This document shows, piece after piece, positions 5,924 through 55,500 of a stretch of 64,000 bases of DNA; position 1 is the first letter of the stretch; each line of letters starts with the position of its first letter. This stretch comes from Geosiphon pyriformis uo1. Taxonomy: Eukaryota; Fungi; Glomeromycota. The stretch covers positions 378,757 to 442,756 of the forward strand of contig JAAOMT010000134.1 in NCBI GenBank assembly GCA_016748015.1. The letters run 5' to 3'. A program made the position numbers and the translations under genes. Below the pieces are notes generated by a model. That model had not been told where the DNA came from. It saw only the letters and a list, made by a program, of their open reading frames with translations, and made no database searches.

Positions 5924-6751
5924 TGTTACTCATAAAATATAGGAAGTATATTAGCATATAAATTAGCCAATCAGAAATAGTCATAGTAAATGTGGAATTC
6001 CAAGATTCCTCTTAAGAGAAATTGTAGAATTCCAGAAATTTCAAGATTCTCGTACAAAGAATCACAGAATTCCAGAATTCCAGGATTCTTTTCAAAAGGA
6101 ATTGCAGGATTCCTGGTGTGAAAAATTAAGAAATTAAGGAATTTCAATTATGTATATATAGCAGTAGTGTTAGAAACAAAAAGAGACAGAATTTTTTAGT
6201 TAAAAACCTTCCAGTTTAAATTTGATCTAAGCAATCTTCCACATTACAAATAAATAATTATTTACTATCTCAATTCATTCTCCACTATCAACATTTTATG
6301 TTGATAGTAATTGATACTTAACCACACTGAAACAATAGCTCTTGATCATGGCTATTGATGGGATACTAACTTGTAATCGCTTTTACTTGTTTCTTTATTT
6401 TCTTTTTATTTTTTTGTTATTTCTTTGGGTTTTACTAAATTGATTAAGAATTAAGTGCTAAGATACAAACATCATAGGGACTGGTAAAAGACCCATGAAA
6501 CAAGAGTAGAACACTCATAGATTTGAGAATAGCTTACTAAGAGAATTATTGGCCACAATGCTGAGAAAAAAATTTGACAAAACTGTGGTTTCAGGAAGCT
6601 ACGGATAAAACCATTAATTAAATCTCTGTCCAAAAACTTCACACCAAAACCTTCAGAAAACACACCTTTAGATATTAACACCACATATCAATTAAGCACC
6701 AAGTTACAAGTTTGTTATTTGATTTGAGACCTCAAATAATCATCTGTAACA
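5924..6751 (+). repeat. 5' LTR of Gypsy copy 2
   Basis: TGTTAC...GTAACA terminal inverted ends; direct repeat of 14739-15601. Confidence 0.95.
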
Positions 6752-9700: not shown

Positions 9701-12700
9701 GGGCAACAACAGGAAAAGAAAGAAAAGAGAAGAACCTACCTGGAATTCTGACCAAGCCTGGAGAACCAATGACAATTAAGAGGAGCTAATAGATTGGGAA
9801 TAGAAAAAAAAGACAAAAGAAAAAGGAAAAAGGAAGGAAGAAGGATCAATATCCACTAGCATCACCACTTATAATTCTTACACTATACCACAGCAATCTG
9901 CTTATTGCTGTCCAAAATTGGTATGCATCAATTGCAACAAGAAATTGTTATCAATGGGTGTCTGCTGTAGCAACAATAAGGAATGCCAGATGGCAACCAA
10001 GTTTTATTATCACTTATATGTCATAGAACATTTCAAAAGACCAAAATGAATAAAAAAATGGAATAATGAGCCATGCTTGGCTTGTGGGGAAACTCTCCTT
10101 AATGAAAGAATGTGAAATGACATTCCTGGGAGAGGAGGAACATGCGACAAATTGTGTCAATACACAATTCTCATAAGTGACTGGGTAAGAAAAAAAACAC
10201 CCATAGACACTGCTTGAAGACATACAGTCAAATGATTGGACAGATGTCCACATAATGATGATAAAATCTAGTGAATGGCACTCGCCAAAATCAAAGAAGC
10301 ATCATCAGAAGAAATAAAAACAATTAAAAATAACCCACCTGAACCCATAGAACTTGACTGAGACCCAGAACCAGCCATAAATCTACTAGATCCAGAACAA
10401 TTTCATGAACACTATTAGGAATTAGCACCCACTAGAAAGGAACAAGAGCAATGGTTGGAAAAAATCAACGCTCGACTATGTGACTTTCAATACTGTAATA
10501 AGTGTGATCTTAATTACAATCCACCAATCTGCATAATCTACATGATCCCAGAAAAAGAAGAATCAATCAACAGCTGTACATTAGAATTGGAATTAAATTT
10601 CAATCCCAGTTTAAACTCTGACAATAATGACAAAAACAATGGTTCTAGCTTTGCTCTAAATAACAATGAAACTTATGACGATTCAAACTCTGATTCAAAC
10701 TCCAAAACATTTATTGCACTTTCTGACCTCACCAAGGAACAGGAACTTAAATGGTTCAGCAATAATGGTGAAGGTATTAGGCCAGAATGTGCACATAATA
10801 CTGATGCAGAGTTTGATCTGAGATATCCAGGGAAGAATGCCATAAAATTGGAACCCTATTTGTGCACTTGTATTGATCTTAAAATAGCATTAAAAATTCT
10901 AGCAACAACAATGGTTCAGTTAATATCTAGAAGTAGCTTAGCCAAAAAAGGAATCAACATTAAAAGAGAAATAATTGACACAAGATATGTAGGAAATATT
11001 ATTGCTATGTTACAAAATAACTCAAAAAAAGCATATATTATAGATCTAAACGAAAAGATAGCACAGGCAATATTCCTATCTCTGGTGAAAACCAGAGAAG
11101 AATTAGGGATTACTGCTAGAGAGATACAGAAATTCGGATCAACAAGTAGAATAAACATATCAGTTAATATGGCAGAGAAAGAAGTTATTAACAAAGAAGA
11201 AATTATTTCAACTCATCAATCAATTTCTATTCCACTATATGACCAGTATATATTAGCCATAAAAAAAGAAGTAAAGAATCAAGCTCAGTTGTTTGAAACA
11301 GAAGCCACCATTTGCAAATCAGGAGAGATTGGACTCACTAATCTCTACATATTAGCCAAAAGCCCTAAAAACATCAAAATTTTCATCTACAACACAACAG
11401 GAAATATCATAAAAATACCAAAGGAAACTGTCATTGGATATTTAACCACTGAAGTTAAGGATTAACCACCAGACCATATTTCAGATTTTCTACAGCTTTG
11501 TGAATATGTGGACATCACATCACAAACCATTTATGGGTGAAGTGAATGTTATCTGTTCCAACCAGAACAATTGGAACAGATAAACATGGAGAATTTAGAC
11601 CCACTCTAACAGATGCAACTAAGGATGTTACTCAGCAATTTCAATGACATTTTTGCTAGTAAAAATGAATTTGGCCATACCAACATCATTTAACATCATC
11701 CAACATCAGATTAAGACTGGAGATGCAATGTCAATTAAACAAAGAGCATACAGAGTACCAGTTAGTCATGAGATCATTTGTCAAAAAATCAATTAGATAC
11801 TTGTCAACAGGCTAATTCAGTCATCAATAAGTCCACGGTCATTACCAGTGGTACTAGTTTGAAAGAAAAATAAGAAAATCTGCTTTTGTGTGGATTACCA
11901 GAAACTGAATGAAATAACCAAAGGAGACAACTATTTAACTCCAAAGATCCAAGAACTATTTGACACTTTTGGAGGAAATAAATAGTTCTTAATACTAGAT
12001 TTAGATAGTGGTTACTGGCAAGTAGCCATGGATTTAGCCAACAAAGAGAAAACAGCATTTACCATAAGAGAGAGAAATTTTGAGTTTAAAGTCATGCCAT
12101 TTGGCTTGATGAATGTCCCAGCAATATTTCAATGGCTTATGAAAATTGTTTATACTAAAAATGTGAAGTATAAATAAACAGAAGCTCAACAAAAAGCATT
12201 CAACACACTAAGAAGAAAGCTTATTTAAGCTCCAGTGTTGATGTATCCAGATCACAACAAACCATTTATCATTACCACCAATACATCAGGCCAAGCATTG
12301 GGAGCAGTACTATCACAGAAAAGACCAAATAGAAGAAAACATCTAGTAACTTATGCCAGTAGAAGCTTAAGTCCAGCTGAAAAGAACTATAGAACACCAG
12401 CATTAGAATACTTAGCAATCTATTGGGCAGTTATAAAATGGAAAGAATACTTGAGCCAAAAGTTTGAAATATATATGGATCACAAAGAATTGACTTCAAT
12501 CCAGAAGCAAAAATTTGAAGACAACCGCCATGTCAGATGGAAAATAGAACTTTCAACATTCAATTATATGATACATTATAAAAAGGGAAAAGACAATAAA
12601 AATGCTAATGGATTGTTGTAGATGAAACAAATCTAAAAAACCAAAAATATAACAAAAGATGAATATACAAAAATACCAACAACTCTAATATTATATAAAT

Positions 12701-21540: not shown

Positions 21541-23850
21541 ATGACCAGAGCAAAGAATAAAAAGATTGCACCCATTACTTTTTCTATAGTAACTAATAAA
21601 GTTTCTACATAAAAAAGTTTCTTTATTATTAAAGCAGCTAAACATAACATCTTGGCTACATTTTCCTTGAATATTGATAGTGATAGGCTGCCTTTGGTGG
21701 CCATTAAAGCATCTTCCTTATCTTTGACTGGTTTTTTACCAGTCAAAGTTTCTTCAAAGAGACACACTTAAGTTAGTTTTAGTATTGTCTCTACTTCTTT
21801 TAAGAGCCCAAAAATTTTTAATAGTAGACTAGTTAACAAGCTGGTTTTTTCTATTATAGTTTTTACACCTAGTACTATTAGTATTACTTTTTCAAACAAA
21901 ATAATCAAAAAAACCAAAAATTTAAAAAAGTAAGAGCAGTTATTTGTCTCTGCTATTGTTATACTGAACTTTTTTGTAGTTTCAACTAAGATCTTAGATA
22001 AGATCTTTATTGTTTTATTTGGCATATTATCCAAAATAGGCCAAGATCAACTATTGGTTGTGTTGCCAAATATGATGCTTTTTGGCAAATTCTTATTAAT
22101 TTTAAAAGCAAAACAATTATCTTCTATTGAGTCATCTGTTTTTAAGAACTGGGCCAATTAAATAAAAACTGAATTATCTTTTTTGGTTTCTGGTGTTATT
22201 GCTAATAGTATTTGGAAAACTGTTACTAGTTATCAAAAGTTTACTAAGTAAATAATCTTTACTTTAATATTTAGTAATACTTTCAAAATCAAATTGGCTT
22301 ATATTAAGGATGTTTTTTGGTTTATACATAATTTTTTAAGTGTAAAGTCTGTATTAAAAGACAATATAAAGCTTTTTTGTATGGAGTTTGCTTCTTAAAG
22401 TTCTTTAAATGCTGTATTTCTGGTTGAATTCACAAGTTTTATTTGTCTTGTTACTCTTAAAATTGCCAAGTTTTTGGTAATTTCTGAGTTTGGTTCTTTT
22501 TCTGCTATTATTATACTGTATAATGTGCTCTTGGATGTGTTTTTTGTCAATATTAAGTCAGTTTTTGGTGTTTTTGGTGAAGTTTTTCATGTTGTATTAA
22601 AGTTTGCTGGTATTTAACAATACATAATTGTTTATTTTAATGAATTAAATACTGTTATATCTGTTTTTAATTACTAATTAGTATTGGTAGACAAAGATAA
22701 TGTTCGAATTTTTCTTCTTATGAATCAAAAAAAACTATTCTGTTTTGTGATAAGTTTAGAGCCAAGTTAATTAATTTTCTTTCTGGCTGTATTGCTTTTG
22801 AGATTAGTAATATGATTTTTCAAATTGATAGTTAGATTTGTTTTATTCTTTATTTATCTAATTCTGGTTGTTATTTCTAATTTGCTTTGATTACATTTGG
22901 CTTTTAAGTTGATTTGGACTTTGCAGTTGTCAACTGAGAAGATGCCATATTTGGTAAGAAACCTTTGATTGTTAACACTATTTTAGATGCCAAAAGATAG
23001 AACATTTGGTTGCAAACTGTACAGTTTTTTTATCTTCTTTTTCCATAACTCCCAAAATATTTAAATCATGTTTTGTAAATAGTGTTTTTTATATCAAGAC
23101 TTCTGTTCATTCTAATTTTTCGGATTTTTTTTCTTTGGTGGCTTCTGTTTTTCCTTTTGTAATTGTTAATAACTCTTTGTTTTTCTCTTGGCTGGTGTTT
23201 CTGGAATTTGATTTGGTTAAGTTGTCAGCTTTAGTTGAATTAATTGTTAAACCTGTTAGTATATTAGTTATTGTATTTAAACATTTTATTAAAGATGATC
23301 TTATCTCAGACCTGTGTTGGCTTGAGTATAGTATCCCAATAAGCTCCATACAGTTGTTGGATACAAGTGGATGTCGATGTCACTCTTAATTTAAAGATCA
23401 ATAAGCTTATGATTTATCTGGATTTTTTTAGCAAGATAATTGGTAAGTTGGAAAGAGAGGTGGTTTTTTTGAAAAAAAAGTATTACATAAATAATGTTAA
23501 TATGTCTGGTATTTTAGAGTATTTACTTAATGTAAATAATAATGTGTTTTCTAACTTGATGTTTTTTTGAACACACAAATCTGTTAATGTTAAAATAGAT
23601 TCTTTAAAAACAGCTAAATGGCTGGTTAGATTGGTTTTTTATAGTATTATTTTATTTGATATTATTCAAAAGATGTCATCTTTGGATAAGTTTTCTTTTG
23701 TTATATCAATTTAGCATAACCTAAACTGGTTTAAGTAGCTGGTTATATGTAGAAAGTATATAAACTACATTTAACACTGAAATACTTAGTTTGTTTCTAA
23801 TTTTTAGATAGTAATTAAATCTTACTTATTAAATCTAATAAAAAAAAATA
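21541..23850 (+). mobile_element. ORF1-only LINE derivative (HAL1-like architecture), degenerate
   Basis: Frame from ATG 21541 encodes IILYNVLLDV...FGVFGEVFHVVLKFAGI*QYIIVYF...*LVLVDKDNVRI, which aligns with LINE ORF1 VVIKKISMD...SEFGNIKSIRI*LINMWQKTVIEF...SFFIKKNSVCV. Ends ~23714, followed by an A-rich tract ~23838-23848. No ORF2. Confidence 0.7.
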
Positions 23851-30668: not shown

Positions 30669-31800
30669 ATTTAATATATATTAAATATAATTTATATAAT
30701 AAATTATGTGTATTTAATTACGTAGAATTATTTAAATTTATGGATTTTTTTAAATATTTAATCCAAATTAATAATAATTCAAATTATCTGTTTTTTTAAA
30801 AAAAAAGATTTTTATATTAAATTTAAATACAATAAAATAATATTGTAATTGTTTTATAAAATTAAAATAAAATATTTAAAATTTATTATAAAATTTATAA
30901 TTTTTGAATTAAATTATAATTCTTTAAAATATTGATTATTAAAACAAAAAAATATATAAAATACTTGGTAATATTTGACAAAATTATTTTTTTCTTGTTA
31001 ATATATTGTAAAATTTAAAAATATTTATAACAATCAATAAAAATAAAAAACAATAAAAACAATAAAAACAATAACAATAACAATAACAATAATAAAAAGA
31101 TTAAAATTAGATTAAATTTTAGCCAAAAAAAATATTTTTACAATATTTTGCTTAATTTTTTATTATTAAAAATTATTATAAGTAATTATTTTTTTAGTTA
31201 TTTTTTAAAACACTCAAAAAAAGTATATATATATATATTTTTAAACAATTAATAAATAAAAAAATTTGGTTAAATTATTAAGTTAATTAATAATTTGTAA
31301 ATAATTTATTAAAAATCAAGTTAAATAACCAAATTAATAATCAAATTAATAATCAAATTAACAATTTAATTATTAATTAACCAATAATTAATTTTAAGAA
31401 CTATTATAATATATAACTAAATTAATATTATTAAATAATATAAAAATAATAAATAATAAATTAAAATATAAAAAATAGTTTAATATTAAAATAATAAATA
31501 CTTAATAATTAATATTATAAATTTTAATTAATAAAAAGTTAATAATTTGAGAATATTGAATCATTAATCAAATTAATACATAAATATTAAAATATGCAAC
31601 ATTATTAATACAACTTTTTTAATTTATAAAGTTTTTATTTTTTGTAATTGTTAAATTTTTTTTCAAAAATTATTGTATATGTTTAAATTAAGTTACTCAA
31701 ATTAATATTTTAAGTGTTTTACATTGAATTTTTTCATAACTTTTGGTGTAATTTTCCTAAAGAAAAATTATATCAATTTTTATAAAGCTTTCATTACGAT
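30669..31800. other. Extremely AT-rich tract with (AACAAT)n-type repeats
   Basis: Nearly devoid of G/C; AAAAACAAT/AACAAT units ~31040-31095. Confidence 0.6.
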
Positions 31801-31904
31801 GAAAACGTATTTCTTTTTTCTTTAAAATCTTTTTAGTAACAGCTTGTATGGTAAAAATGCTTTCATGTTCCATTGTTAATCATACTGTCAATATGGATGG
31901 CACT

Positions 31905-32299
31905 TTCTGCAGCTTTAAGACCTGAATCAAGCTTTGATGGACCTTTCCTGCCACAAAAATCAAGTATTTTTGAATCTTGGGAATGCATTAAAGACGTTTT
32001 GACAAATATCACACTTGAAACAGTCTGTAAAAAGTGGTGCGGAATTTTCTAGGCCCACACCCACCCGTATAATATCTCTGTTAGGCTCGCTCAAAAAAAG
32101 CCATAATATCAGAGTATCACTCCCAGATGATTATGGGATTTTTGTAATCCCCTCACATACATCTTTATGGGAGCGACTAGTTTGGCTCTTAACAAAAGAA
32201 AGCATTGTCTGCTCGAGGCTTGCCTGCTTATCTATGCTTTCTCTCATTAGGAATGTGATCACACAGACAGACACCAATTTTCTGGATGATACTGCAGAA
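31905..32299 (-). ncRNA. Candidate structured RNA element (MTR4 3' UTR or independent ncRNA), family unidentified
   Basis: At least five 8-12 bp stems that pair fully only on the minus strand through G-U wobbles; see findings. Confidence 0.5.
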
Positions 32300-32356
32300 T
32301 TTAACCTCTTTTGAGCTAAAACGACTATTATAAATCCCTCGTGAATACGTACCAAA

Positions 32357-35300
32357 TCAAAGGTATAGAGAGGCTGCGAATACTATGTCACGCCTAATTT
32401 TCTCCATCGCTTTAGTTATAGATGGAGGAAATAAAAAGACATGCTTGAATATATCTAAATGATTTGCTCCCGGAAACATAGATTAAAAAACACGATAACT
32501 AACCTTCAGAAAATTTATTCTCTAATTCTATATTACCAATGGTTTTTGTTGCTGAGACCATTGTCCGAAGAACTTCATCTAAAGTCCTAAAATTTCTAAT
32601 GATATTGCCTTCGTACATGCTGGTGTATTTGCAAATTTCCGAGAATTTGGCCCCCTAAAGGTTTCAAGTTAAAATATTACCTCGAGAGCAGTGAAAGAAA
32701 AATCGTATAAAAACGTCTTACTTTACACCATGCGTACACAATTTCCATCATATCAGGATGAAATTTTTGAACATATTCTTTTTCATCTACAACCAACTTG
32801 CATTCCAGGCTGATCGCGGCAATCCGTCGCGCTGTTTCTTTAAGTTGCTGAAATGGTTTTCTAAATTCTTCTTGTAATGTCTCACCTGTTTCCTCTCCTT
32901 CAATTTGAAGAAAACAACTCATGAGAGCAGCGGTAGTTTCAACAGAGAGATCATTAAAGACACCATTCATTAGCATTTCCGTAAGTTCTAATTCGTGACC
33001 ACAATTAATTTCACAGGCGACGCGACCTTTCACATCTACAACATCATTGGCAGTGATGTATCCTAATCGCCGTAGAACTCGTTTACGACACCTAAGCTCC
33101 TCAAGCTGCATAATAGAATGTGCGGATTGTATTTTTTTCTTGAGTGCCTTGATTTTGGCTTGGACGGCCACCTTTCTCGTATACATTTCATATAAATCCG
33201 GGAGTCGTGGTGAATTGTGAAGAGAATTTAGAAGAAGTTTTGATTCAAGAATCTCAATTTTCTAAGATTTTAAACGGGTACGTTAATATAAATCAATTTT
33301 TGTTTTGACAATCAATGAGCCTTGATTGATTGATGAAGCTCACCCTCAAGAGCTTTTTAAAGCCTTCATCCGTGATGCCCATATCAGTTACAGGATCCAA
33401 CAAAGGAAGCCCATTATTAAATCTTTGAAATACTTCCTGCATGCTTTTATAAACTGCCTCTCTTTGGTCCAGAGGTTTCAAATCTTTTGGAGGGAAAATA
33501 CGGATTTCGCTAATGCCATCAACACATGTTAGATCGACGGGAACAACCTGATGCAAAATTTTTATTATTCAAGGCCTTTCATTTGAATGGCAAAATATAG
33601 ACGCATCAGCTCAAGATATCTACCATCATTTCTCCCTTTTGATTCTCAAGACATGGGCGTACTCCAGTCGTGCTTCCATCGGCATTCTTGGCAACAGCTG
33701 ACTTGGGGTCACAATGTAACAAAACATCAACGATATATTGTATCCTATTTGTTGGTTTTGATACCGAAAAATTGTTTCCAGAATGATCTTGTTCTTGCTG
33801 TAACGTAGTGAATTCGATAAGCTTCATGTAGAAATGAAGCATAATTCATTAGTCACAAAAAGCTACCTTCTTTTTCTCAGCGGTGACTACCATTCCCCAT
33901 CCAAAATCCATGTTGTCATGCTTCACCCTAATCAATCTTCCTGGTTGTAGGAAAGGTAGAGAAAATTGAGGTTGATTTATCACATCTCGCATATCTTTGG
34001 TGTACATTTCGAGCTGATCACGTAGCTCATAATAATCCGCAATCACTTCTTCTTCGGGTATTTCGATGGAGACCTTTTCTTCTTCTGCTCTTTGAATTTC
34101 TGAAATAAAAAAATAAAAGTTGGTTATTGATTTTGAATCAAAGGCGTTGCATAGATTTTAATTTTATCTTTCACCTTCTTCCAGGGCAGGTAAGCTGGCA
34201 GTGTTTTGGAATTGATAAAAACTACGTTGAAGAATATATTCCGGACTAAGACCTTCCACTCTTGTCATGTTCAAAATCATGTTGTAGCCGAGGTGAAAGG
34301 CTGATGCTAGCTGATCAGCATCGCCCTATGTTTTTCATTCGATTTAATCAAGAATATAACAATGAAACGACGTTGAACAATATTTTATACTCTGAACATA
34401 CTTTTATCATATTCTTAACCACAGGTGGATCCATCCTTTCTGTCACTATCATAAAAACAATGCCTCTTTCGTCAAGCCCTCTACGTCCTGCTCGACCGGA
34501 CATTTGAATGTATTCTCCCGAGGATATCTGAGATAAAGAATGCGTTAAATTTTCCAGGTTTTAATTAAATTCATTCTACGAAAACAAAACTTTACACTCA
34601 CATATCGAGTAGTTTGTCCATCAAATTTTTTCAAGTTCGAGAAAACAACCGTCTTCGCGGGCATGTTTAATCCCATAGCAAAAGTCTCGGTCGCAAATAA
34701 AACTTTGATCAAACCTTCCTGGAACAATATCTCGGTTACTTCCTTTAAAAAAGGCAATAGACCCGAATGATGAATACCAATCCCTCGTTTCAAAAGGGGT
34801 AATATAGCATCGATCTGAGGCAGATTACGGTCATCATCTGAGAGAGAGCTAATAGCGTTGTGGAAAACTTGGGACACCATGTCTCTTTCATTATCTATTC
34901 CATAAAAATAATTTTCAGCAATGAACAAAGAATGATAAATTTCTAAAGCTGGATTTCTTGGATAAAAATGGTATCATTAAACTTGCCATCATTAAAATCA
35001 AAGGTAACGTCTTGTGCAAAAGCTTCGCAATCTTTTTTTCCAAAAGAGAATACAATCACAGGATTATAATTTCTCTGCATGATCATCTTTACGATTTTAT
35101 ACATATCAGAAGGTCCTGTTAAGAGAAAGAGGAAGAGGGATGTTTTAATGAAACACAACAATCAAGAGGTTTGATAAGAAATAATTTTTTTTTTGACTCT
35201 ATACCCTTTGGTTGTTCAATTCGACCTCTTTTAGTTTTTTTTCCTTTACTTCCCGCCGGATAATCCCCATCCCAGTCTTTTTTCAATGCAGAAATTGACT

Positions 35301-36659
35301 GTTGAAAGATGTCTTCACGAAATACACCTTTCTCGTCAACAACCATGTAAATCCCGTCAGTCCCTGACGGAAATACATAATGCTGTAAAGGTGTGGGGCG
35401 GAAATCGGTATACACGACATGGCAAGGCTAATAATATTGACGTGAATAAATTAAATAAGATGGGAGAAATAAAAAAAATAAATAAGATAAACTAAAATTT
35501 TTTACCTGTTCATGTATTTTGCATATCCATTCGGCGAATTCCATCGCGTTCGGAATAGTTGCCGATAAAAATACGTAATGAACTTGGTGAGGTAATAAGA
35601 TGATTGTTTCTTCCCATACAACCCCACGAGCTACCATCATTAATTAATGTTAAGAGTTAATAATTTGAATTTTCGACGACAAAAATTTGTGAAAAATTCC
35701 CAAAAATTACTTACTCTTGTCACGCATATAATGAATTTCATCAAAGACAACCCAAGCCACTTCACGCATAACTTCACTACCACGGTAAAGCATACTACGT
35801 AGAATCTACAGAAAATTGAGGGATCTTGAATTTACATAATATATTTCACCGCATATTTTGTAAAATACTAACCTCGGTTGTCATGACTAGGCAACTTGCT
35901 GTGGGGTTGATGGTTACATCTCCAGTCATCAATCCCACATCCCCAAATTCCTCTTGTAGTTCTCTATACTTTTGATTGCTCAGAGCCTATATTTAATGAG
36001 AATGAAAATTAGTTTTTCATGTAAATTTATGGATAGAAACTCGGGGATCAAAATTTTATAAAGGAAAATACTTTAATAGGACTGGTATAAATGACTCTTT
36101 GCTTATTTCTTAACCCTTGAGCAATAGCATATTCAGCGACAACTGTTTTCCCAGCTGAAGTGTGAGCACTAACCAATACAGACTCTGATCTTTCAATACA
36201 TTGAATAGAAACTTTTTGAAACGGATCTAATGTGAAAGGATATGTACGCGGCGGATCCGGTGGCGATACATGCTCGGATAGAGGAATGTATGGATAAGTA
36301 GGGGGAAGTGCTACTTGATGACGGACCTTTTAAAAGAAAAAAAAAATCTAGAGGCCTTGTTTGTTATTAGAAAATTATTCAAGTTGTGAAAATCTGACCT
36401 GGTGAGTTAACAGAACACTTTTATCTTCAGTGGGAAGATCAGAGGCCAAATTGATAGAGGCAGGAACTTCTCTAACAGCTTTTGTTTCGAAAACATCAGT
36501 CACAACCGGCAGTGGGGTCACGGTATATATCTTGGCCTTTTTTGTTTGTGATTCACGATCATCAATAGGATCAAGGTCGATGATTTCCTTGTTGAACCCA
36601 ACACCCAACCCTCTCTTTTTTGATCCAGAAGACGAATTAATACCGTCCCCTCTATACAT
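32357..36659 (-). CDS. MTR4: Ski2-like DExH RNA helicase Mtr4/Dob1 (TRAMP/exosome cofactor), multi-exon
   Basis: [87 protein letters not shown], arch/KOW region, C-terminal [13 protein letters not shown]-stop (TGA at 32357-32359). Confidence 0.96.
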
Positions 36660-42121: not shown

Positions 42122-43044
42122 ACTGTGTTATCACCTGCAAAATTTGATTTTTTGGCCACGACTTATTTGCTAAACAAGGCAAACTACATATAATGTTCTA
42201 AAGTCCACTGCTTTACAAGCGGCCGGCTAATAAAAATTTTCGAGTTGGTCTGTATCAACGGTTCCACCAAGTTTTATCACCTTTTAATTATGCAAGCATT
42301 CCCACTATTTTCACCCAACAAACTCTCTTTATATTGGTATCTTGCTTAAATTGTTACACCTATTCTCATTCCACAATCCCTTAATTCAAATATTTTTTTA
42401 AAAAGTCCATTTCGGTTATCGCCACTGATTTTTAATCCTACTACCACCGACTTGGTTCCTTAACATATATAAAAAACTTTTCATCTCCCTTTTCAAAGTC
42501 GCAAATCTCGCGTCTTTATTTGTAATATAGCCACTGATAAATACATTTAACTACCGTATATATTTTTCCTCATTTTTCCTCATTTTCTTATTTTTTTATT
42601 TTCTTATTTTTTATTTCAAAACCACCCACCCACACATTACCACAATCGCTGACTCTGTTCAGTATGGCGTTTTAAAGAGGAATCCAAGTATACAAAAGAT
42701 GACCTTATTTTCATTCGATTCTACAGTGTTCACGGCCATCGCGTTATCGCCTGCTAGCTTTCTAATTGATCAGCGCTATCTAAAGACTTTGAAAATACAA
42801 AGATTCTCTTGCTACCATCCAAATCATTTATTCGCTCGACATTACCGCCCAAAGTCATTCATAAACCTCTAAAAAACGTGTTGCTAAATCTCTGTGCGGC
42901 AAGTTAACATTCATCGTGGGCCTAGGTCTACAGAAAAGCACACTCAAGCCGGTTCTTGAAACAAAAACACAGAAAATTCAAAAATAAAAGTTACAAATCC
43001 TTCCTTTTCACGCCAAAAAAATTGTACAATTATTCTATTTTCTT

Positions 43045-43045
43045 A

Positions 43046-43079
<34 letters not shown>

Positions 43080-43126
43080 CCAACCAACCAACCAACCAAC
43101 CAACCAATCGATCGATCGATCGATCA
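43045..43126. repeat. Compound microsatellite CAAT/CAAC/CGAT
   Basis: Visible directly, ~45 bp upstream of the kinase ATG. Confidence 0.9.
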
Positions 43127-43168
43127 AACAGCCAACCAATAAAGGACAATTTAAAGATACATTTCATA

Positions 43169-45510
43169 ATGGTTCAACGATCGGCCTCTGATCGAAATCC
43201 TACAAAACAAGAACAATGGTCAACGGGGCAGTTACCCTCTCAAATAATTATGCCTTTTGGACCTGGGCATATTATTGCTGATCCTGTTAGTGGATCAAAC
43301 TACGAAGTGGTTCAGCCTCTGGGGAATGGCTCTTATGCAATGGTATATTTGGTGCGCAATCTAAAAGATGACCAGTACTACGCCCTGAAGTGTCTGTCAA
43401 AAGCCAACATGGATCAACAGCAACTAGAAATTCAACGTAGTGAGGTAATTTCACAATTTTATCTTAACCTCAAAACTCCTCTTAATCATATTTTTATCAT
43501 GATCCATAATTTAGACTTGTAGAAATTTTGATTCATATTTTAACAATTCGCGATATTTAAATTTAACAACCTATCTTAGGTTTTGCTTCACGAAAGAGTT
43601 TCAGGTCACCCTAATATCGTATATCTCTATCATACTTTCGATACATCCGATTGGCTTTTCCTTGTCATGGAATATTGTGACGGTGAAGATCTTTACTATT
43701 GGCTCACACGGGAAAATGATCGTATAGACACCAGAACAGGACGTATGCTTTCGGAGCGCGAGCATCTTGAAGTTGTTCAACAGGTCTTTCTGCAGATGCT
43801 TGAAGCAGTCCATCATTGTCACAGTCGTGGCGTTGCGCATCGTGATTTGAAGCCGGAAAACTTTATTATTACGGTCGACAATAGGACTGGAAAAGTTAAG
43901 ATACAGTTGGCTGATTTTGGACTGGCTACGGATGAATTGGAATCGACAGATTTTGATTGCGGCTCCAAACCTTACATGAGTTTTGGTGAGCATTTATTTT
44001 TTTAATGAATAAACTCATTTTAAAGGAGAATAAACAAAACATTGATTTTTGTGCTCATCTTTCTACAGAATGTTATAATCCTGTTGGGGAAACCTACCGT
44101 CCTCGCATGTGCGATGTTTGGTCGCTGGGTGTGATTCTCATTAATATGATTTATCACCGGATACCTTGGTCTGCTCCACACCCCGAGGAATGTTCATCTT
44201 TTGCTGAATTCCAACGGGAAAAAGCCGACTTTCTAATGCGTAAATTCTATGAACCAAAACTTCCATACGAGGTTGCAGATTTCTTTGCAACTCGAATTTT
44301 TTGTATCCCCGAAAAAGGCCGCATAAGCGTTCACGAATTTAAAGTCTGGTGCCAAAATTTGGTACACATGATGATGGGATCCACCATTAATGTAAATAAT
44401 TTAGACCTACGTCGAATGTCAATCTCTTCGGCTACAAAGATGAATGAAGAAGCTGATATTGATTCCGAGAATCGTCATGTTTATGCTCGGAAAAAATCAT
44501 GGTCAGACGTCTTTGAGGAATCCATCGGTCTTGAAATGGACTTTACTATTCCTGTCATCTTCAAACACGAAGAGTTTAGCTCTCCTAACACTACCTTCCA
44601 AGACGAAGTGTATAATCCACCCATTATTAAGAACTCTAGGGCAGAACATGTCGAGTCGTATATATCGGAGGCTTCCAGAGAACGTGGTGATGTAAAAGAA
44701 ATAGAATATATAGATGACGAGCCACAAGTCGGCAATAATGCTAACAATAGTGATGCTGACTCCGGTTTTGGCACAGATGAAGATGGTACTGGAAACATTA
44801 TTCGCCGAGTGAGAGCCCAGCAGCATGAAGCTTCGGGCCCTAATAACACTAAAAATGCCTATTACAAAGTAGATATTTCTAAAACTCCGACCAAGGTGAT
44901 TTATTGTAGACCAAGGCCATGGGGTGAACAGAAGGATCTTAATAATCAGCGTGAACATGCCACAACTGTTAATGGGTCCCCTCCTAACGACCATTGGAGT
45001 TCTTACAAGCAACGTCGTGAGCGTTTGGAGCAGCGACGCAAAGAGAAAGAAGAAAAGAAATTGAATATGTTGGCACAGAATCGCCGTCGTGGATTAAGTG
45101 TTGGGTCAAGTGATGAACCTGGGAGCAATTCTTTCTCACGACGACCTCGTCCTCATCAACCTTCTCCCTCACATCCCAGAAGATTTTCCAAAATTGACCA
45201 TAATGTGGCTTCGCCCTCAAATTTCAAGAGAAGCTCTCTTCCGCCTAGTCCAACAAATATCAAGTATGCGAAATCAAATATAGGATCCGAGATCTACGCC
45301 GCCGGTTCCGGAACATCTGCTGGCGTTAAGAAAACATCTCCCGTCTCCCCGTCAACTGTGCGCAAGAATAATGGAGAAAATCCTATTCAATCTTCACAAG
45401 TTCCTAAAAAAGTTGCCAGATCCTCAAAGACTTCTTTAACCAAAATGTTGGAGAAAGTGGTTGCTTTTAACCGCGGAGTCAGAATTGCTGGCCAAGGTGT
45501 CTGCATTTAA
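43169..45510 (+). CDS. Ser/Thr protein kinase, fungal Ran1/Pat1-Ksp1-Sks1 group; 3 exons (43169-43444, 43580-43985, 44069-45510)
   Basis: LGNGSYAMVY, YALKCL, HRDLKPEN, LADFGLAT, CGSKPYMSFEC, DVWSLGVILINM; long disordered C-tail. Canonical GT-AG junctions restore the frame. Confidence 0.92.
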
Positions 45511-46164
45511 AACCGGGAATTAGATTCAGTTCTATAGTTAATTGATATTTTTTTGGGACGCTCAAGTTTTCTTTCAATCAACTTTGATCAAATTTCCCTT
45601 TCGCCTTTTCCACTTGTTGGTTTTTTCATATGTTTTTGTCTCCACTTTTCTCTGTTAGATTTCATGTGTGTTCTTTGACTAGATAAATTCTCCGAGTTAC
45701 TTTGTTTTCTCATGACCAGCCAATCTTATTTAAATATGTCGGCCTATTTTGCTAGGTACATTTGATTTTTCCACTTCAGCTTTATATAAGAGTCAAACAA
45801 AAAAAGCGTATCCAAAACATTTTTACCATAATTGTAAATTTCTTTGAGTTACAATTGGAAGCATGCATGTAAAGAACAATTTTTTTCCGTAAACGAAAAA
45901 AACTCGAAAATTTGAAAAAAGCGTCGATTAAGCTCAACCAAAAAGAATTTAAAATCATTTAAAAAAACTTGTATTTTTTTCAAATTTAGCTTTCCTCTTC
46001 CCTCATTACGACATCAGATGTATTTTTGGTTTCTTTGTTTTTATTTTAGCATATTTGATTATTTTGCACATTTCTGCTTTTTGCTTTAAATTTTAAAACA
46101 ACGAGTCCCCATTCCCTGCATCATTCATAAATTCATCATCCATCATTTTGCAAACACATTTCAC

Positions 46165-46199
46165 AACCCTAACCTAACCCTAACCCTAACCCTAACCCT
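46165..46199 (+). repeat. Interstitial telomere-type repeat (AACCCT) x5 plus 1 variant
   Basis: AACCCT AACCT AACCCT AACCCT AACCCT AACCCT, the complement of TTAGGG. Confidence 0.85.

Positions 46200-46200
<1 letters not shown>

Positions 46201-46260
<60 letters not shown>
46201..46260. repeat. (ACT)20 microsatellite
   Basis: Visible directly, abutting the telomeric repeats. Confidence 0.95.
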
Positions 46261-46262
<2 letters not shown>

Positions 46263-46521
46263 CACAACTACAACTACATCAACATCAGAAAAAAATAAAA
46301 ATAAAAACAAATATATTTGTACATATATATATATATTTTTTTGAATCAAACGACTGTTAAATGTTCAAAAATTTCAAAACCCTCTACTAACCGAATTATG
46401 CTTCCCAATCATTATAAAAAACAAAAATATGAAATCTAATTTTGGGGTCAGCTAGAGAGCTATAAAATAAAGTCTTCAATTTTATTTCTGAATAAATTTA
46501 GCCAGCTCCGCTACTCACAGC

Positions 46522-48291
46522 ATGGAAGATTATGCTCGCAAAGAAAGCGAATTCCAAGCTGGGATACCACCACGTCTTGTTTCCGTTTTTTATGCCGTCT
46601 TTGACGATGTCCAAGGCCCAAAAGTCGTGTACGAGGTTCCGGAAGGCTCCATAATTCCAAATTCAGAGTCCAATACTCAACCTATAATCGATTTCGACTC
46701 CGTTTACGAATATATCATTCCTAAAGAGTCTTTATGTGGTCACCTTGTCTCTTTTTGCACCGACTCTCACAAAGTCCTGGGGTTCCCAGTGTGGATCGAT
46801 AGCACAGAGTTTCGTGAATATAGACGAAACTTTTTCATGTTCAACTTGTGCTTTGTGTTTGACCGGAACGCGGATACTAGTAGTTATGATCCGGTAGTGC
46901 GAAAAATTGCTCGTGTATTGACTGGCTTGGAATTGGAAAGTGGATTTTTGTATCACGAAGGCACCAAGAAGATTATGTATAATGTAATTGAACAGTTATT
47001 AGAAGATTTGAATAGTTATTGTGAATGTCAAATCCCAATCAGTAAGTATTTAGTCGAAATGAATTCATGAAGAAAAGAAAAAGGGTACACTCATGTTAAC
47101 TAAATTTTTACAAAACTTTTTTTTGCTTTTCTCAGACTCGGCGAATACAATCAACTTGAAACTTTTCCCCACTTACCCGAACCCTCCATCAGTTTACGAT
47201 TATCAAGTGCCCATTTGCGCCGTCGATCTCGAAGCTTTGATGGATGTGAATTGGGATATCACCATGAAAAGTGTAAGTATGTGTGTGAATTCATTAAATT
47301 TTCCATTCTCTCTCTCAGTTACCATTAGAGATCGACCCTTCAATTTCCCAGATTGCCATAAAAATTAATGGGGTACATCATGTTAAGAAAGTTGCACAAT
47401 TGGCAGATGTTGATTATGGGCTCGCGAGAAAATGCATGGAGCATTTACTGTATGTACAGGAACAGTTTTTGATCGCTAGATTTTCCACTAATTTATTATA
47501 TTGGGAATTCAAGGTATTATGGTTGCATCATTATGGTAGATATCTTTCAGGTATTTTTTATTATCTCTTCAATAATTTTTTGAATCCTCTTAAAATTTTA
47601 ACTCAAGATGAACAACAATTTGGACGAACCCAGTTTTCTAATATCTACGCGATAAAACCGGATATAATGCGGGTGCTCGAGGATGAAGCAGTCCAGAATG
47701 AGTGTCTATCATATGTCACCAAACCTGGTAAAACGTTAAGATTATTCATGATTTCTCTGAGATCATGTCTTAATAGGTTTTGGAATTCCTCCCTCCTCCC
47801 TCCCCAAGGTTTAATGCCACCCTCTTTTGCAACCCTATTTTCTCTTTATTGTCAACTTAAGTATGGCCTCACACTCAAAGAATGGATTGAGGAAAACCAG
47901 GTAGCCTCGTTAAGCATTGATATAAGGTGATCAGAGTAATCGAATTAAGGGATTCCGGACTATTTATATATCTTAACCTAGAAGGTTTTTGTCATGTCTC
48001 ATTCAAGGCGATTTATAACGTTCGGCGTAATCAAGGGATTCCTATACCGAGTTCACAAATATCCCTTTCTCCCAGAAACCTCAGAGAGTTCTTTTCCTAC
48101 TAAATTGCGCAAGTAATAACAATCTGGAGCATCAGAATCTTGTATTTCCACGAGCTAATACATCTTCCCCATAAAGGATGCTTAACGGGAAGCATCATTA
48201 TGACGAGATTTGCACTCAGGAGGGATGCAGTGCCAAAGAGTTGGACGCAACGTTATCAGTGGAATCAGAGATCAAATTCATTTGGCGATAA
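46522..48291 (+). CDS. NPR2: Nitrogen permease regulator 2 (SEACIT/GATOR1 subunit), multi-exon
   Basis: VFYAVFDDVQGPKVVYEVP, YIIPKESLC, YRRNFFMFNLCFVF, LEDLNSYCECQIPI, NLKLFP, WDITM, IFQFSNIY, IDIRRFITFGVIKGFLYRVHKYP, GKHHYDEIC. Stop TAA 48289-48291. Confidence 0.95.
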
Positions 48292-49442
48292 TGAATAGTG
48301 CTTATAAGGTATGGCCGATTTTTCTATTTTTTCTGGTCCTCGTGTTTATTTTTTCAAGTTCACAAAATGCGTTGTCTTCAAATTCCGTTTTGTTGCTAAT
48401 CAAGCTTGCAAGATAGGAAAGTTTTGTTTTCAGTTGATCATAAAGTTTGTTAAGATTGGTTTTAATACATGTAGTAGTATCAGTCCCTAATTTAGTGGAT
48501 TATATATCAACAATAAATGGCGCAATAAATTTTAAACCCCACAATTTTCATTAATGCTGGAAGATTAAGAATTTTCATGATAAATTTTGTCATTGATTCA
48601 AAGTGTGGCTGGCTGACGTTCCTTGAAGAAAACGGGTCAACAATCCTTCCCTTTAACGGTATGATTAATAAATGATATGAAGATTATTATTAATTTTGTA
48701 AACTAAAAGACAGATATTATATTTAAATTTAAAATATTGACTTTTGTTAAATAAATTTTTAATCTGTTTTAATTAATAAAATTATGATTCGCGGATCGAA
48801 AATCTTTAAATATGGAAAAAAAGAGTATTGTTTTGTTAAGATGTGCCTCCGATACCCATTAAAAAAACACGGCATCCTGCGTACGCTTTAAATATTTCTA
48901 TTTTCCGACTAATACGGAGCAGGTGTTTCGGGGAACACTTTTTATAAATGATTACATGTACCCGTAAAGCGATATTGGATACGCACTACGGCTGAAGAAC
49001 AGTGGTCAGGCTTTATTCTAACTAACCAACATCCTTATTACATCATCCTTTGGAGAGTAATTGACTTTAGAATAGGAGCTCTCTTCTGTAATGAGCGAAT
49101 TTAGGCTCAATTAAATTTAACAAGCTTCCTTACCCCGGGGAAAAAAGATTTTTGATTTGCCGGAATCAAGAAAGTGGATCAAAATATTATAAATATTTTC
49201 ATCAATCATCATGCTATCCAATTCTTTTTGAGACATGATTCGCTATCTGCTATGCACCAACAACCCCTTTTTTGGTTTTTTTTCCTTTAAATGGGTATTT
49301 TATAACGTGGCATTTTTTTCATTTAAAATCCGCATCAGGCGTTTTCTTGCATTTAAATTGTTTTTTTTTAAAGCGATCTCTTTTCTGATCTTCTTTGATT
49401 CACATCTTCTCACTAATTTCTCTTAATAGCCTTATTATTAAA

Positions 49443-51398
49443 ATGAGTCTTTCTCGACAACAGCGCATCACTATTTTACTTTTCATAGACACTATTTTCT
49501 TTTTTGCCGAGATAATAAGTGGTTATTATGTCGGTTCTTTGGCGCTGATTGCTGATTCGTTTCACATGTTAAATGATGTAATGAGCTTAATCGTCGCCGC
49601 TTATGCTATAAAGGTTGGTTAATTAAGTCGAATTTTAACCAAATACCAGTGTTTAATAGAATCTTGATCGTTTATTGTTCCCTTTCTCGTAGCTCGCTGG
49701 CAGGACAACTTTCGATTCTAATTATTCATACGGTTGGCAACGTGCCGAGGTTTTAGGAGCACTCATAAATGGTGTCTTCTTGCTTGCCTTATGCTTTAGT
49801 ATTTTTGTTGAGGCTCTAGAAAGGCTGTATTCGCCTCAAGGTATTGTTGCTGATGGTTATTGATCTCTTTTTCATGTCCTGGTTTCATTTCAGCTTCTTG
49901 ACTCCTTGATTCTTTTGAAGAAATTCGCAAACCTCTTTTGGTGCTCGGGGTTGGTTGTGCTGGCCTGGCTTCCAATATTATTGGATTAATATTATTCCAT
50001 GGTGGGTTTACTGTTATCAAACTTTTTTCATAACCAATGTTTTGAAGCAATAATCTAGTAATTTACCCTAATTTTATACCGTCAACTTTTTTAGAACATT
50101 CACACGAAGGACACTCACACTCATCGTCTGCTCCTCATTCTCATACGAAACAGATCGAAACGCAGTTAGATCATGAAAGAAGTTTGTCCACCCCATTAGA
50201 TGAAATACTGGTTTGTGGTCATCCCTCACAAGTTCGTCAATCCGTATTAGCCGCAGGAGCAGAACTGAAACAAAAAGAAAAAGAAGAGGGTAACGTAGAG
50301 GAAGATGAAATATATAATGATAATGATGATGATGTTGTTGTGGAAGAAGGGGACGAAACCATGGTCAATACCGGTGAAGGCTCTTCAGCAATATCAAAAT
50401 CTAGAGATAGAACTTTCGCGAAATTAAATGGTGATTCTCCCATCCCCGCCTCACAATCGCGTTCACGTCCACCCAGCTATGGTTCAGTTGACCGTGGTAC
50501 TACATTCAAAAATGAGCAGGAGGATGAAAACAATGCTCATACTCAGGAGAAGCCAGTCCAAAAAAGCCACAAAAACCTCAATATGCAGGGCGTTTTTCTC
50601 CATGTTCTTGGCGATGCGTTAGGCAATATTGGTGTGATTGCCACTGCTTTATTTATCCAATATACAACCTTTGAATGGAAGAACTTGGCAGATCCTATTA
50701 TAAGGTACTTGATCATACCAATTCATATTTTCACATTGATTTTTCCTACAAAATTCTAATCTATTCTTTTCATCAGTTTAATTATAACTTGTATAATATT
50801 CTCGACAGCTCTACCTCTTGGTATGAATATTTTTTAATTCATTTGAGCTTTATTTTAATTTAATACAGTATGTGAACTTGACTTTTAAAATCAATTTCAG
50901 TTCGAAGTGCTTCGTCTATTCTTTTGCAAGCTGTCCCATCTGGTATACCAATCGACGAAGTGCGTAGTAAATTACTCCGTGTAAGTCCTCCACCTGATGC
51001 ATTTGGATAATTTATAAAATTATATATCTGGCTATGTGCAATATCTCAAACTTTTCTGCGATTCTTAGACACAAGGGGTACAATCTGTACATGAGCTTCA
51101 TATCTGGCAGTTATCTGACACAAAGCTCATAGCATCTGTTCATGTGCATCTCGATCAATCCCGTAATTACATGACAGTCGCAGCAAACATTAGAAGAATA
51201 TTGCATTTATATGGAATTCACTCAGCGACGATCCAACCAGAATATAAAAAAATAGAACCGAAATCATTGAATACTGTGACCGATTCACATGAAGAGTCGC
51301 ATTGTCTATTACGTTGTGCTGATGATAATTCATGCGAGCAACATGAATGTTGTTCTAGACCGGCGGTGGCACAGCAGCCTGTTTCGTATAAAGATTGA
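49443..51398 (+). CDS. ZRC1: Cation diffusion facilitator zinc transporter, ZRC1/COT1 (ZnT1)-like, multi-exon
   Basis: SLALIADSFHMLND, YSYGWQRAEVLGALINGVFL, His-rich loop HEHSHEGHSH, LNMQGVFLHVLGDALGNIGVI, VHELHIWQL, GIHSATIQPE, Cys-rich tail. Confidence 0.93.
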
Positions 51399-51414
51399 AC
51401 TTTGGTTTTGCGAG

Positions 51415-51476
51415 CCCCCCCCCCCCCCCCCCCCCCNNNNNNNNNNNNNNNNNNNNGCCCCCCCCCCCCCCCCCCA
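51415..51476. other. Poly-C tract containing an assembly gap (20 N, 51437-51456)
   Basis: Visible directly. Confidence 0.97.
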
Positions 51477-52575
51477 AGGTTCAATCGTTTTACAGTTTGA
51501 AAACATTATCTTCTGCCGATTCCTGAGATGGATCATGAATTCACCAAAGTAAATTCAATCGGGATCGAACTACTTGACACCTTTTTGGAAAAATGCGAAA
51601 GAATCTTTTCCCGCCTTATATATATATTTTTATTTATATATCTTTCGTTAGAGGACTATTTTATGTAATTAACTAATCTTCTCAACCACAAATAAGGCAG
51701 TCGACGTGAACCAAATCCTTATAGAGAGCTTCCGATTCAATTTATGTCCAAGATCAAAAAAACTAAGAACTTTCTCAATTGGCTTTACAATACGTTCTGT
51801 ATATCCTAGAATCTGTCAATAATTAGTAACTATAACATCTACATGTAAGAGACAATCGGAGAACTTTTGCCAGCATAGCAGTCAGCAAATTGGTCTTGAA
51901 TTAAACAGTTATTATTTGGATTTCTTTCCTCAAGATAAAAATATGATTAGTCAGGTGAGTTTTTAAAATATTACATTTGTAATTGCTAATTACTTGGTGC
52001 TTTATTAAATGTATTTAAAATTTCATCATTTATCACTTTTTTTTGTATTTTAAAAATAAATTTACCAAAATTTTAACTAAACTAATTATTAGAAATAATA
52101 ATGTAAAAAATCAATTTAGTGATAATAAACTCGAACCAAAAAAAAACAATGGTTTATCATTTATGCTTGAGATAAACTTTTGAATTAAATGATCAAACGT
52201 TAAATAATAAAATCTTTAAAGTTTTCTGTTAATGATGATAATATTTGTAATATTTGAATTTGATTTTTCTTGTTTCAAAAAATCAGTTTAATAAAAATCG
52301 CAGATTCAATGTATACGATATTCTTCAAAGAATAACAAATACGATAAAATAATAAGCTCGAAACGAATCAATTCTACAGCAATCAAGTCAACCTCTCAAT
52401 TTAAATTTCAAACAATCTGTTTATATATTAAAACTAAACTACAAACTCGAAATTTCGAAATAATTTTGATCCTAATTACATCATGATACGATATTGGATG
52501 AACTTGATAATGAAAATAATATCGCGACTAATATTTATCATCATAATTACTAACAGATTCTTTCAGAGAGCAAAC

Positions 52576-55500
52576 CTATTCTGAGGCTAAACAGCGGTTG
52601 CTATCACTAACATATTCATTGACAATGAAACGGGCAGCTTCAATAGCACGTTTAGTAATGTCCTCCCTAGGGCCTTGAATGCCTTTGCTTTTGAACAGTC
52701 TTTCAACCTCTTCAGTAGCTAATTTTTCGATGAGCTGCTGTGATGCATCGCTGTTGTGGGCTTGACGATTATGAGTTTCTTCACGTGAATGCCTATATCT
52801 ACAGATGGTCTCAGCGGCGGCACCGGCAACAAGATGTTCAGAATTTAAGGAGACGGTTTTATGAACTACGGTACGTTCACTTTCCCAACCAGATTCTCCT
52901 TCAACCTTTTCCCATTTCCCCTTCGAAGTGAAAGAGGAAACGGATTTTTCAACAAAATAATGGTGGGTTGCTTGTAATAATTCTTGTTCCAACGCGGCAT
53001 CACCAATTTGCGCCCTAATCCAAGAGCGGGCACGTTCATATTCGGTCTTCAAGTGTCCCTCATGGCTTTTGTGAACTTCCTCAATGTAAACTAGAGTAAG
53101 GGCAGTTTCGTAGACAGAGGAATCCAAGTTTCGGAGACGATCACTTTGCACGTTTTGTCGGATTGAAGACGTCAAGACATTAGTGGTGATCCGAAGATTG
53201 TTCGAGATGGATTGGTGAAGAGTGAAAGACCCATTATGTTGCTGAGCAGAAACCAAGCTCTTGATTTCTTCAACAGAAGAAGTGTCGCGAAGTTTTTGAA
53301 TAGCTTCTTGTTTCAATTCTTCAGTAACTTCAATTTCATGCTCAGTTACTTCTACCGAACTAATTACTTTTTCAATTACCAGTTTTTCAGAAGTAGCCAA
53401 AAGTTCTTTTTCTAGTTCGTGGTCACCTATTTGATTCTTCAGGTATTGGCGTGCGAGTTTGGATTGTTCTTGCCACGATTGTTTATGAGCGACCGAAGTT
53501 TTTTCGAGATATGAAATGACGATTGCGGTTTGCCACCAAGAAGGTTTCGCGGCTTTCTTAAGTTTGTCACTGATTTGATATTCATGAATAGAATCAGTGA
53601 AGTTGTCCCCTTCGATTTGAAGTTGATAAGAGACTTGGTGACTAATTTCAAAAGATCCGTCCTGTTTTTGTTTCGAGATAGCCTCTTGAGCCACTTCAAG
53701 TGGGATCGAATTTTGAATAGCAGTCAGGATTGCTTCCTGCTTTTCTTGGGAATATTCTTTTTTATCACCAATTCTTTTACGCGTGGTTTTGCGTTGAGTG
53801 GCTCCTTGTTGGAGGATAACCTTTCGTGTAACTTTTTCAACTACAAACTTTTCAGACACTTGAAGAATTTCTTCTTCCAATTTGGAATCTTTGATCTCGT
53901 GTCTGAGATAATTTCTGGCTTCATCATATTTGGCTTGCCAATGGGAATCATGGGCCGAAGAAGTCTTTTTGAGGTAGGCAAGAGTGACAGCGGTTGACCA
54001 CCAAGTAGGTTTAGCAGATTTCTTGAGTTTTTCACTGACTTCATAATTTTGTACAGAGGTGATCAAATTTTCCGAAGATGAAATGTCAAGTTCATCGGTA
54101 ATAACATTGGTCAATTCGAATGATCCGTTATCTTTCTGTGCCGATATTATCGATTGTGCAGTTTCGACAGTGGTCTTAGATGCAATAATGTCATTAAATA
54201 CAGCTTCTTGAATTTCAGAAGAACTTGCTGCTTTTGAAACTACTAATTTCTGAGTGGCCTTTTCAACCACAAATTCCTCTGAAGTTTTAATTATTTCTTC
54301 TTCCAGAGTAGAATCATTAATTTCATCTTTAAGATATTTTCGGGCTTTTTCGTACTCGGTTTGCCAATGTGATTGATGATTAGCTGAAGCCTTTTTGAGA
54401 TAAGCGAGAGTAACAGCGGTCGTCCACCAAGAAGGTTTGGCGGATTTTTTCAAATTTTCGCTGATCTCATGTTTGTGAATTGCGGCTACTAGGCTTTCAG
54501 AGGATGATATATCCAACTCTTGTGCTACCACTTGACTTAGTTCAAAAGACCCATTTTTCTTTTGAGAAGAAATTACTGTTTGTGTAGTTTCGACCGTCGT
54601 TTTTTCTTGTATCTCGGATACAGCTTGTTTTTGCCCTTCATGAGAGTGCCATAAAAGAGCACCGGTACCAGCAACAATTGAACCAATTATACCCGCAGTT
54701 ACCAACGAAGATTTTTGTTTTCCCTTCACTTCATGATCATCATTGTGTTGTTGTTGTTGCTGCTGCTGCTGCTGTTGTTGTTGAGTATTGACAGCTGTAA
54801 CTTGGGTTTCTTTTCTTTGGTCTACCTTTTTTATATTACCTAAATCTACTTGTTGTTCTGTTTCGGAGCCAACTATTTTACTAGATTGAGTTTTCGTCTT
54901 GTCAACAGTCTCTTTGAGGCTTTCCTGAGTAGTATGAGCGCCACCGGTTTGAGTTTTCGTCTTGTCAACAGTCTCTTTGAGGCTTTCCTGAGTAGTATGA
55001 GCGCCACCGGTTGCTGTTTCGACGCCTTGTTGAGTTGAAGATACTGTACCCGTGGTATTTTTGTTCTTATCGGTAATCTTTTCAGTTAAAGTATGAGCTC
55101 CTTCTTTAACTGATGCGGCTATACCTTCGGCGCCTTCATGTGCCTTTTTGCCCAAGAAGTAGAGAGCGGTTCCTCCTAGACCAGCGGCAGCAACTCCAGC
55201 AATAGCAGTGACTCCGGCGGTCTTTTTAGCAAAATGACCAGCAGAGCTAGCGATATCGGAAATCGTGGAAGTGGTATCAGAAAGTCCATGGGAGATTTTA
55301 GATTTTAAGGATTCTTCGGCTTCTACCGCAGTCTTGGATACGACTTTGTGAGTGATTTTTTCGACAACATACGTCTCGGATACTTGAAGAATTTCTTGTT
55401 CTAATTGAGCATCTTTAATTTCAGCGCTAAGGTACTTGCGAGCTTCATCGTATTTGGTTTGCCAAAGGGAATTATGGGCGGAGGACGTTTTCTTCAAATA

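Follow-up and report, generated by a model that had tools for sequence, protein, structure and literature searches.

Predicted hairpins in the 3' untranslated region of the MTR4 exosome helicase mRNA of the fungus Geosiphon pyriformis

Among the structured elements of fungal mRNAs is a motif in the 3' untranslated region (UTR) of rps0 (PMC5640933), and structures in the mRNAs of RPL12, RPS13, and lysyl-tRNA synthetase have been proposed to serve autoregulation in fungi (PMC8216456). Long 3' UTRs are also known to trigger nonsense-mediated decay (NMD) (PMC2685090), from which fold-back rescues the transcript (PMC2689704). The element considered here, positions 31905-32299 read on the minus strand, lies in a 64,000-nucleotide window of Geosiphon pyriformis DNA (the window is the whole stretch that was analyzed and comes from contig C710 in a fungal assembly of 128 Mb). 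A preliminary description had presented it as a highly structured RNA of about 400 nt next to the gene for MTR4, the RNA helicase of the exosome, and had offered two interpretations, a novel noncoding RNA (ncRNA) or a 3' UTR element through which MTR4 could regulate its own mRNA.

The adjoining gene is the only MTR4 locus in the Geosiphon genome (Table 1). Its spliced model was searched against databases exon by exon: the exon at 32722-33258 is identical at 179 of 179 positions to a database protein (P0241), which is G9A89_018451 of Geosiphon pyriformis and has every domain expected of MTR4 (DEAD, Helicase_C, stalk, beta-barrel, and DSHCT). This exon, the largest of the gene, itself matches the DSHCT and MTR4 beta-barrel domains. 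The spliced RNA contig of run X2 contains none of the 15 introns; one of these, at 34895-34986 on the minus strand, has a GC donor (GC-AG), and its splicing is confirmed by the contig. Elsewhere in the window, the genes at 43000-51500 are ordinary ones, for a protein kinase, NPR2, and a cation-efflux transporter, with a tetranucleotide repeat at 43046-43127, and a repetitive, intronless ORF of 3798 aa occupies 52576-63972 on the minus strand. On its 3' side, MTR4 is followed by AT-rich DNA and LINE-like debris.

Although run X2 carries the label “DNA?,” its spliced joints, together with the single genomic locus of MTR4, show that it is RNA. The contig in question, 3665 nt in length and spanning 36661-31840, extends from MTR4 exon 1 through the whole element. 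Since it is continuous from the spliced exons through the element, the element must lie inside the MTR4 transcript, whose 3' UTR is therefore at least 517 nt long. The 3' UTR half of the earlier interpretation is thereby borne out, by a contig that joins the 16 MTR4 exons to the complete element. The element is part of the MTR4 mRNA 3' UTR, on a strand that we infer; the RNA contigs are unstranded, contain no poly(A), and give neither strand nor true 3' end nor expression level. RNA depth is zero at 31600-31770. The element had been placed immediately downstream of the MTR4 stop codon, but it actually starts 57 nt past this codon, which is the TGA at 32359-32357. A run from a separate study (X3) yielded spliced fragments with depths of 6-8; another of its fragments, with a depth of 9, lies over 31968-32222. 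In a low-depth X3 contig, A32121 is replaced by U (mRNA strand), which disrupts a pair in the best stem, that of hairpin 2; since the only other X3 difference turns an Asp codon into Gly, both may be errors.

The Geosiphon UTR is longer than the 119 nt that follow the stop codon in the Gigaspora RNA contigs, and its GC content of 0.39 compares with 0.23-0.32 in Glomeromycota relatives; noncoding DNA beside other genes in the window also reaches values of 0.3-0.42. In a search for a coding remnant, none of the six frames matched a gene that neighbors MTR4 in relatives (the convergent APH gene of Ambispora was among those compared), and two small ORFs had no match in Pfam.

Table 1. Coordinates of the MTR4 gene, of the parts of its 3' UTR, and of housekeeping RNA genes in the Geosiphon genome (positions are those of the window unless a contig is named)
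Feature	Position	Strand	Remarks
MTR4 (exosome RNA helicase) CDS	32357..36658	-	16 exons, 1040 aa, Geosiphon pyriformis G9A89_018451
MTR4 mRNA 3' UTR	31840..32356	-	at least 517 nt, GC 0.39; one spliced X2 contig; strand and 3' end presumed
Long-range 9-bp helix, 5' strand	32291..32299	-	pairs with 31913-31905; predicted pair probability 0.93
Hairpin 1	32190..32249	-	unbroken 16-bp helix 32249-32234/32205-32190 with 3 G-U, weak apical part; mean pair probability 0.93; local z -3.8
Hairpin 2	32115..32177	-	lower stem 9-10 bp, middle 4-5 bp, apical 6 bp; pair probabilities 0.93-1.0; local z -6.1
Hairpin 3	32076..32114	-	5-bp closing stem (pair probability 0.98), weak interior; competes with the outer arm helix of the preliminary description
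Hairpin 4	32033..32065	-	G-rich/C-rich stem of 8-11 bp, one bulge; 8-bp core pair probability 0.87
3' third of the element	31905..32032	-	carries the 3' strands of the closing helix and pseudoknot suggested earlier; shuffle-level fold
RNase P RNA gene	C651:700572-700885		Geosiphon genome
RNase MRP RNA gene	C778:328319-328622		Geosiphon genome
SRP RNA gene	C674:118050-118344		Metazoa_SRP model 143 bits; not found by Fungi_SRP
U3 RNA gene	C608:24334-24547		E 6e-10

On the minus strand, the 395 nt of the element fold at -116.6 kcal/mol, with a z score of -3.53 and 0 of 100 shuffles as good, and on the plus strand at z -1.50; the shuffle check on both strands, which had been suggested at the outset, thus favors the minus strand. 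The overall score agrees with a highly structured RNA, but not over the length of 400 nt originally envisaged, as better-than-shuffle folding is confined to 32250-32030, with three to four hairpins at 32249-32033. The core (32108-32252) reaches z -4.2, with 0 of 600 shuffles as good, whereas the flanks give z -0.28 at 31905-32030 (114 of 300 shuffles as good) and z +0.2 at 32253-32356. The element is not one coherent 400-nt RNA; rather, the folding models suggest that three to four local hairpins probably form in the MTR4 mRNA.

The helices listed in the preliminary description are complementary on inspection of the sequence, including the approximately ten G-U pairs. Its 12-bp stem (32234-45 with 32194-205) is real and belongs to the longer helix of hairpin 1, and its hairpin at 32065-32033 pairs provided that one G is bulged out. 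In the long arm, the inner helices, which are those of hairpin 2, the most stable part of the element, are strong, but the outer helix (32190-32183 with 32103-32096) does not exceed a pair probability of 0.5 in the ensemble of the whole UTR. A pseudoknot with two crossing helices (32262-68 with 32023-29 and 32252-59 with 32008-15) is not supported by the models: helices of this size are at chance level, since a shuffled 395-mer contains on average, when one G-U is allowed, 20 helices that reach 7 bp and 6 that reach 8 bp, and the crossing pairs would be outcompeted by nested helices, which hold their 3' strands at pair probabilities of 0.83-0.99. Each shuffle contains about one perfect 8-bp helix, a frequency relevant to the 9-bp helix 32299-32291/31913-31905. 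There is an alternative hairpin at about 32143-32094; a structural switch is nonetheless unlikely because preventing the lower stem of hairpin 2 from forming costs about 13 kcal/mol. The main stems contain no A-C mismatch, and the G-U pairs had been read as arguing for selection on the RNA and against a DNA palindrome. They do speak against a decayed DNA palindrome, but they are no proof of selection, since G-U pairs turn up in whatever stem is chosen from a single strand; the choice of strand admits G-U and excludes A-C by construction, and such pairs therefore cannot tell an RNA fold from a chance stem.

Against its own shuffles the element stands above chance; against the background of the window it does so only moderately. 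Among the 117 local folds of the 64 kb with z of -3.5 or lower, hairpin 32177-32115 comes 4th; the core scores z -3.7 against -3.2 to -3.6 at five other 150-nt places (200 shuffles), and the window has about nine further helices with lengths of 14-17 bp. At the scale of 395 nt, 58 strand-windows (from 29 of the 107 windows, each compared with 12 shuffles) gave a mean z of -0.3 with a standard deviation of 1.5, and another such window within the MTR4 gene itself, 35505-35899 on the minus strand, which covers three short exons and introns, scored z -4.6 (12 shuffles), lower than the element. A 16-bp hairpin on the plus strand is found at 35900-35939. Local folds at least as strong as the element are located at 4297-4403, 5993-6113, 10683-10817, and 21683-21810, most of which score on both strands, like DNA palindromes.

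We compared the element with nine MTR4 loci, from Ambispora gerdemannii, A. leptoticha, Diversispora, Rhizophagus, Gigaspora, Scutellospora, Entrophospora, Jimgerdemannia, and one metagenome contig; the query for full-length MTR4 relatives was one exon aligned with two database proteins, and a metagenome scan with one MTR4 exon yielded two distant loci. The MTR4 proteins of Entrophospora, Diversispora, and Rhizophagus (L004, L010, and L011) look more divergent than those of Gigaspora and Ambispora, with orthology assumed, and the Entrophospora locus is scrambled in the assembly. In both Ambispora species, an APH-domain gene (L008:7755-9393 and L009:7678-9317) converges on MTR4, approximately 450-520 bp past the stop codon. 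None of the nine loci, including those of both Ambispora species, has a homologue of the element 3' of the MTR4 stop codon by blastn, nhmmer, or local alignment, the last giving z scores of -0.9 to +0.6 in the eight named genomes and +2.0 in the metagenome contig. Two covariance models likewise had no match at the nine loci (best E 1 and 1.7), and no strong fold was found 3' of MTR4 in Ambispora, where the lowest z is -2.0. The downstream regions of the two Ambispora species align to each other. MTR4 of A. gerdemannii is 78% identical to that of Geosiphon across the C-terminal half. The last MTR4 intron of Geosiphon cannot be aligned to that of Ambispora, and the two differ at 18 of some 32 fourfold sites in the gene. 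As neutral DNA is saturated over this distance, the comparison of downstream regions, which had been suggested as a check on conservation, excludes only an ancient element. On sequence comparison, an ancient MTR4-linked element is thus excluded at the MTR4 loci, which are the loci that the test covers, and within the same set the hairpins are most likely lineage specific. A lack of conservation is one of the outcomes that the preliminary description had named as counting against its reading.

The element also appears to have no second copy. Neither the whole element nor its 3' half found anything other than itself in a DNA search of the genome with common words skipped, two single-sequence covariance models recovered this locus only, and there was no above-chance match to the rest of the window; the preliminary description had likewise expected no dispersed copy and no Rfam family. 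One evenly covered DNA contig reads through the element. Within the reach of these searches, a MITE or other dispersed repeat is rejected: no further copy was found, and the ends show no more than an 8-bp repeat, with no target-site duplication. The genome has at least 68 TnpB-domain loci, and the end of a Fanzor/TnpB guide RNA is rejected on the lack of an above-chance match in 25 of these 68. The CpG ratio is 0.47 in the element and 0.02 in neighboring repeat DNA. Searches of phages and plasmids with blastn gave no match to the element; its stem pattern was not found in viral contigs, and in bacterial genomes it produced chance matches, with 0 of 80 scored with the covariance model in agreement.

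With Rfam 15, the window has 0 matches at the gathering threshold, the best E value for the element being 0.89. The preliminary description had failed to match the element to RNase P/MRP, SRP, U3, or snR30, and rightly so, as all of these are found elsewhere in the genome. The true RNase P RNA (RF00009, 127 bits) is encoded on C651 and the true RNase MRP RNA (RF00030, 132 bits) on C778. The U3 match sits on C608, and the element has no match to the U3 model. The top of hairpin 1 carries CAGG and AGCA, as in the SRP54-binding loop of SRP RNA helix 8, but the spacing is 9 nt instead of 10, there is no GNRA loop, and the closing pairs fail; sequence inspection found neither the symmetric loop nor the GNRA tetraloop of helix 8 in the element, and the real SRP RNA is on C674. 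An m1-like AUUCCUA directly 5' of hairpin 1 recalls the snR30/U17 H/ACA small nucleolar RNA, but the element has no AAACCAU motif with an ACA box behind it. A SNORA73 match of 21 bits, below threshold, was observed at C429:62968-63129 on the plus strand (L007:1501-1662), where an m1-like motif and AAACCAU are followed 7 nt later by an ACA box; judging from these motifs, this locus is probably the Geosiphon snR30/U17 RNA, missed by the snR30 model. Because m1, m2, and the ACA box occur together there, whereas the element has the m1-like stretch only, snR30/U17 is rejected, and the stretch before hairpin 1 is a coincidence. Telomerase RNA is rejected too: the telomeres are TTAGGG, and the longest template match in the element is 6 nt, with about 1.5 repeats being needed. 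No tRNA is present in the element.

Taking these findings together, we favor, with a probability of roughly 0.55, a species-specific structured 3' UTR, the hairpins of which arose in a freely evolving, fairly GC-rich sequence and would have a passive effect. It is possible that the stems impede degradation in the 3'-to-5' direction or give the UTR a compact shape, which would need neither a dedicated ligand nor a conserved shape. Consistent with this are the spliced contig, the single copy without a homologue at the nine loci, the comparable folds within 64 kb, the chance-level 3' third and pseudoknot, the housekeeping RNAs encoded elsewhere, and the GC values of 0.3-0.42 beside other genes. 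Against it stand the rank of the core among the strongest local folds of the window, its strand bias, and the adjacency of two strong hairpins, as well as a UTR longer than that of Gigaspora and richer in GC than those of the Glomeromycota relatives. The stretch is probably an ordinary one, as nothing demonstrates a regulatory role or a separate RNA gene.

The strongest competitor of the passive 3' UTR is a cis-regulatory element that arose recently in the MTR4 mRNA and is under selection, one that might bind a double-stranded-RNA-binding protein or an RNase III-type enzyme or might stall the exosome until MTR4 unwinds it. MTR4 unwinds structured RNA for the exosome, and a position in the mRNA of just such a helicase would be apt; the strand-biased fold, with its approximately ten G-U pairs and main stems free of A-C mismatches, points the same way, as do the fungal RNA-binding proteins with autoregulation via mRNA structures (PMC8216456). 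The known fungal cases, however, emerged from conservation, whereas this element is absent at nine other MTR4 loci; MTR4 is not mentioned in the two papers on fungal RNA motifs (PMC8216456 and PMC5640933), and the A32121U difference, though possibly a sequencing error, breaks a pair in the best stem. We regard such an element as unlikely, if the most credible of the alternatives.

More doubtful is a decayed mobile piece (a fold-back element or MITE, the guide-RNA end of a Fanzor, or the 3' end of a LINE) that was absorbed into the UTR. Its restriction to Geosiphon, the numerous TnpB-domain loci, and LINE-like debris about 2 kb downstream would fit such an origin, but DNA and covariance searches agree on a single copy, neither the 25 TnpB-domain loci nor the rest of the window resembles it above chance, no target-site duplication flanks the 8-bp end repeat, the DNA contig across the element is evenly covered, its CpG ratio is unlike that of the neighboring repeats, and G-U pairs are seen on one strand only.

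An independent ncRNA of unknown kind, overlapping the UTR or cut from it, seems less probable again. Its ends can pair over 9 bp, its size resembles that of housekeeping RNAs, a separate X3 contig covers part of it, and a run of seven T's at 32099-32093 could terminate a polymerase III transcript. That contig, however, has a depth close to that of the coding exons and is one of the fragments of a low-coverage run; there is no Rfam match, telomere template, or tRNA, the RNase P, MRP, SRP, U3, and snR30 RNAs lie elsewhere, and the fold does not form one unit. The proposal of a novel ncRNA thus has no support: neither a homologue nor any trace of a separate transcript was found wherever we searched.

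We give the least credence to a structure-gated feedback, in which hairpins 1-4 would act as a lineage-specific road-block that the nuclear exosome passes only with MTR4, such that MTR4 sets the decay rate of its own mRNA, and no report of MTR4 feedback was found in searches of the literature. Were it true, it would show how the main exosome helicase tunes its own level and would provide a natural substrate for testing MTR4-dependent mRNA decay. The present evidence has a smaller value, in that it assigns the stretch to the MTR4 3' UTR and rules out the known RNA families; the case further illustrates that strong-looking, unconserved folds are common in the Geosiphon genome.

Among known systems, rescue from NMD by fold-back offers one parallel, as the MTR4 UTR is long and its ends can pair near the stop codon; the predicted exterior distance, however, is 17.9, no tighter than the 14.2 +/- 4.9 of shuffles, and with nothing specific pointing there, we reject this candidate. 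The fungal structured mRNA elements (PMC5640933 and PMC8216456) are defined by cross-species conservation, whereas the MTR4 element has no detectable homologue, but the two are alike in that they consist of hairpins in the noncoding part of an mRNA for an RNA-handling protein.
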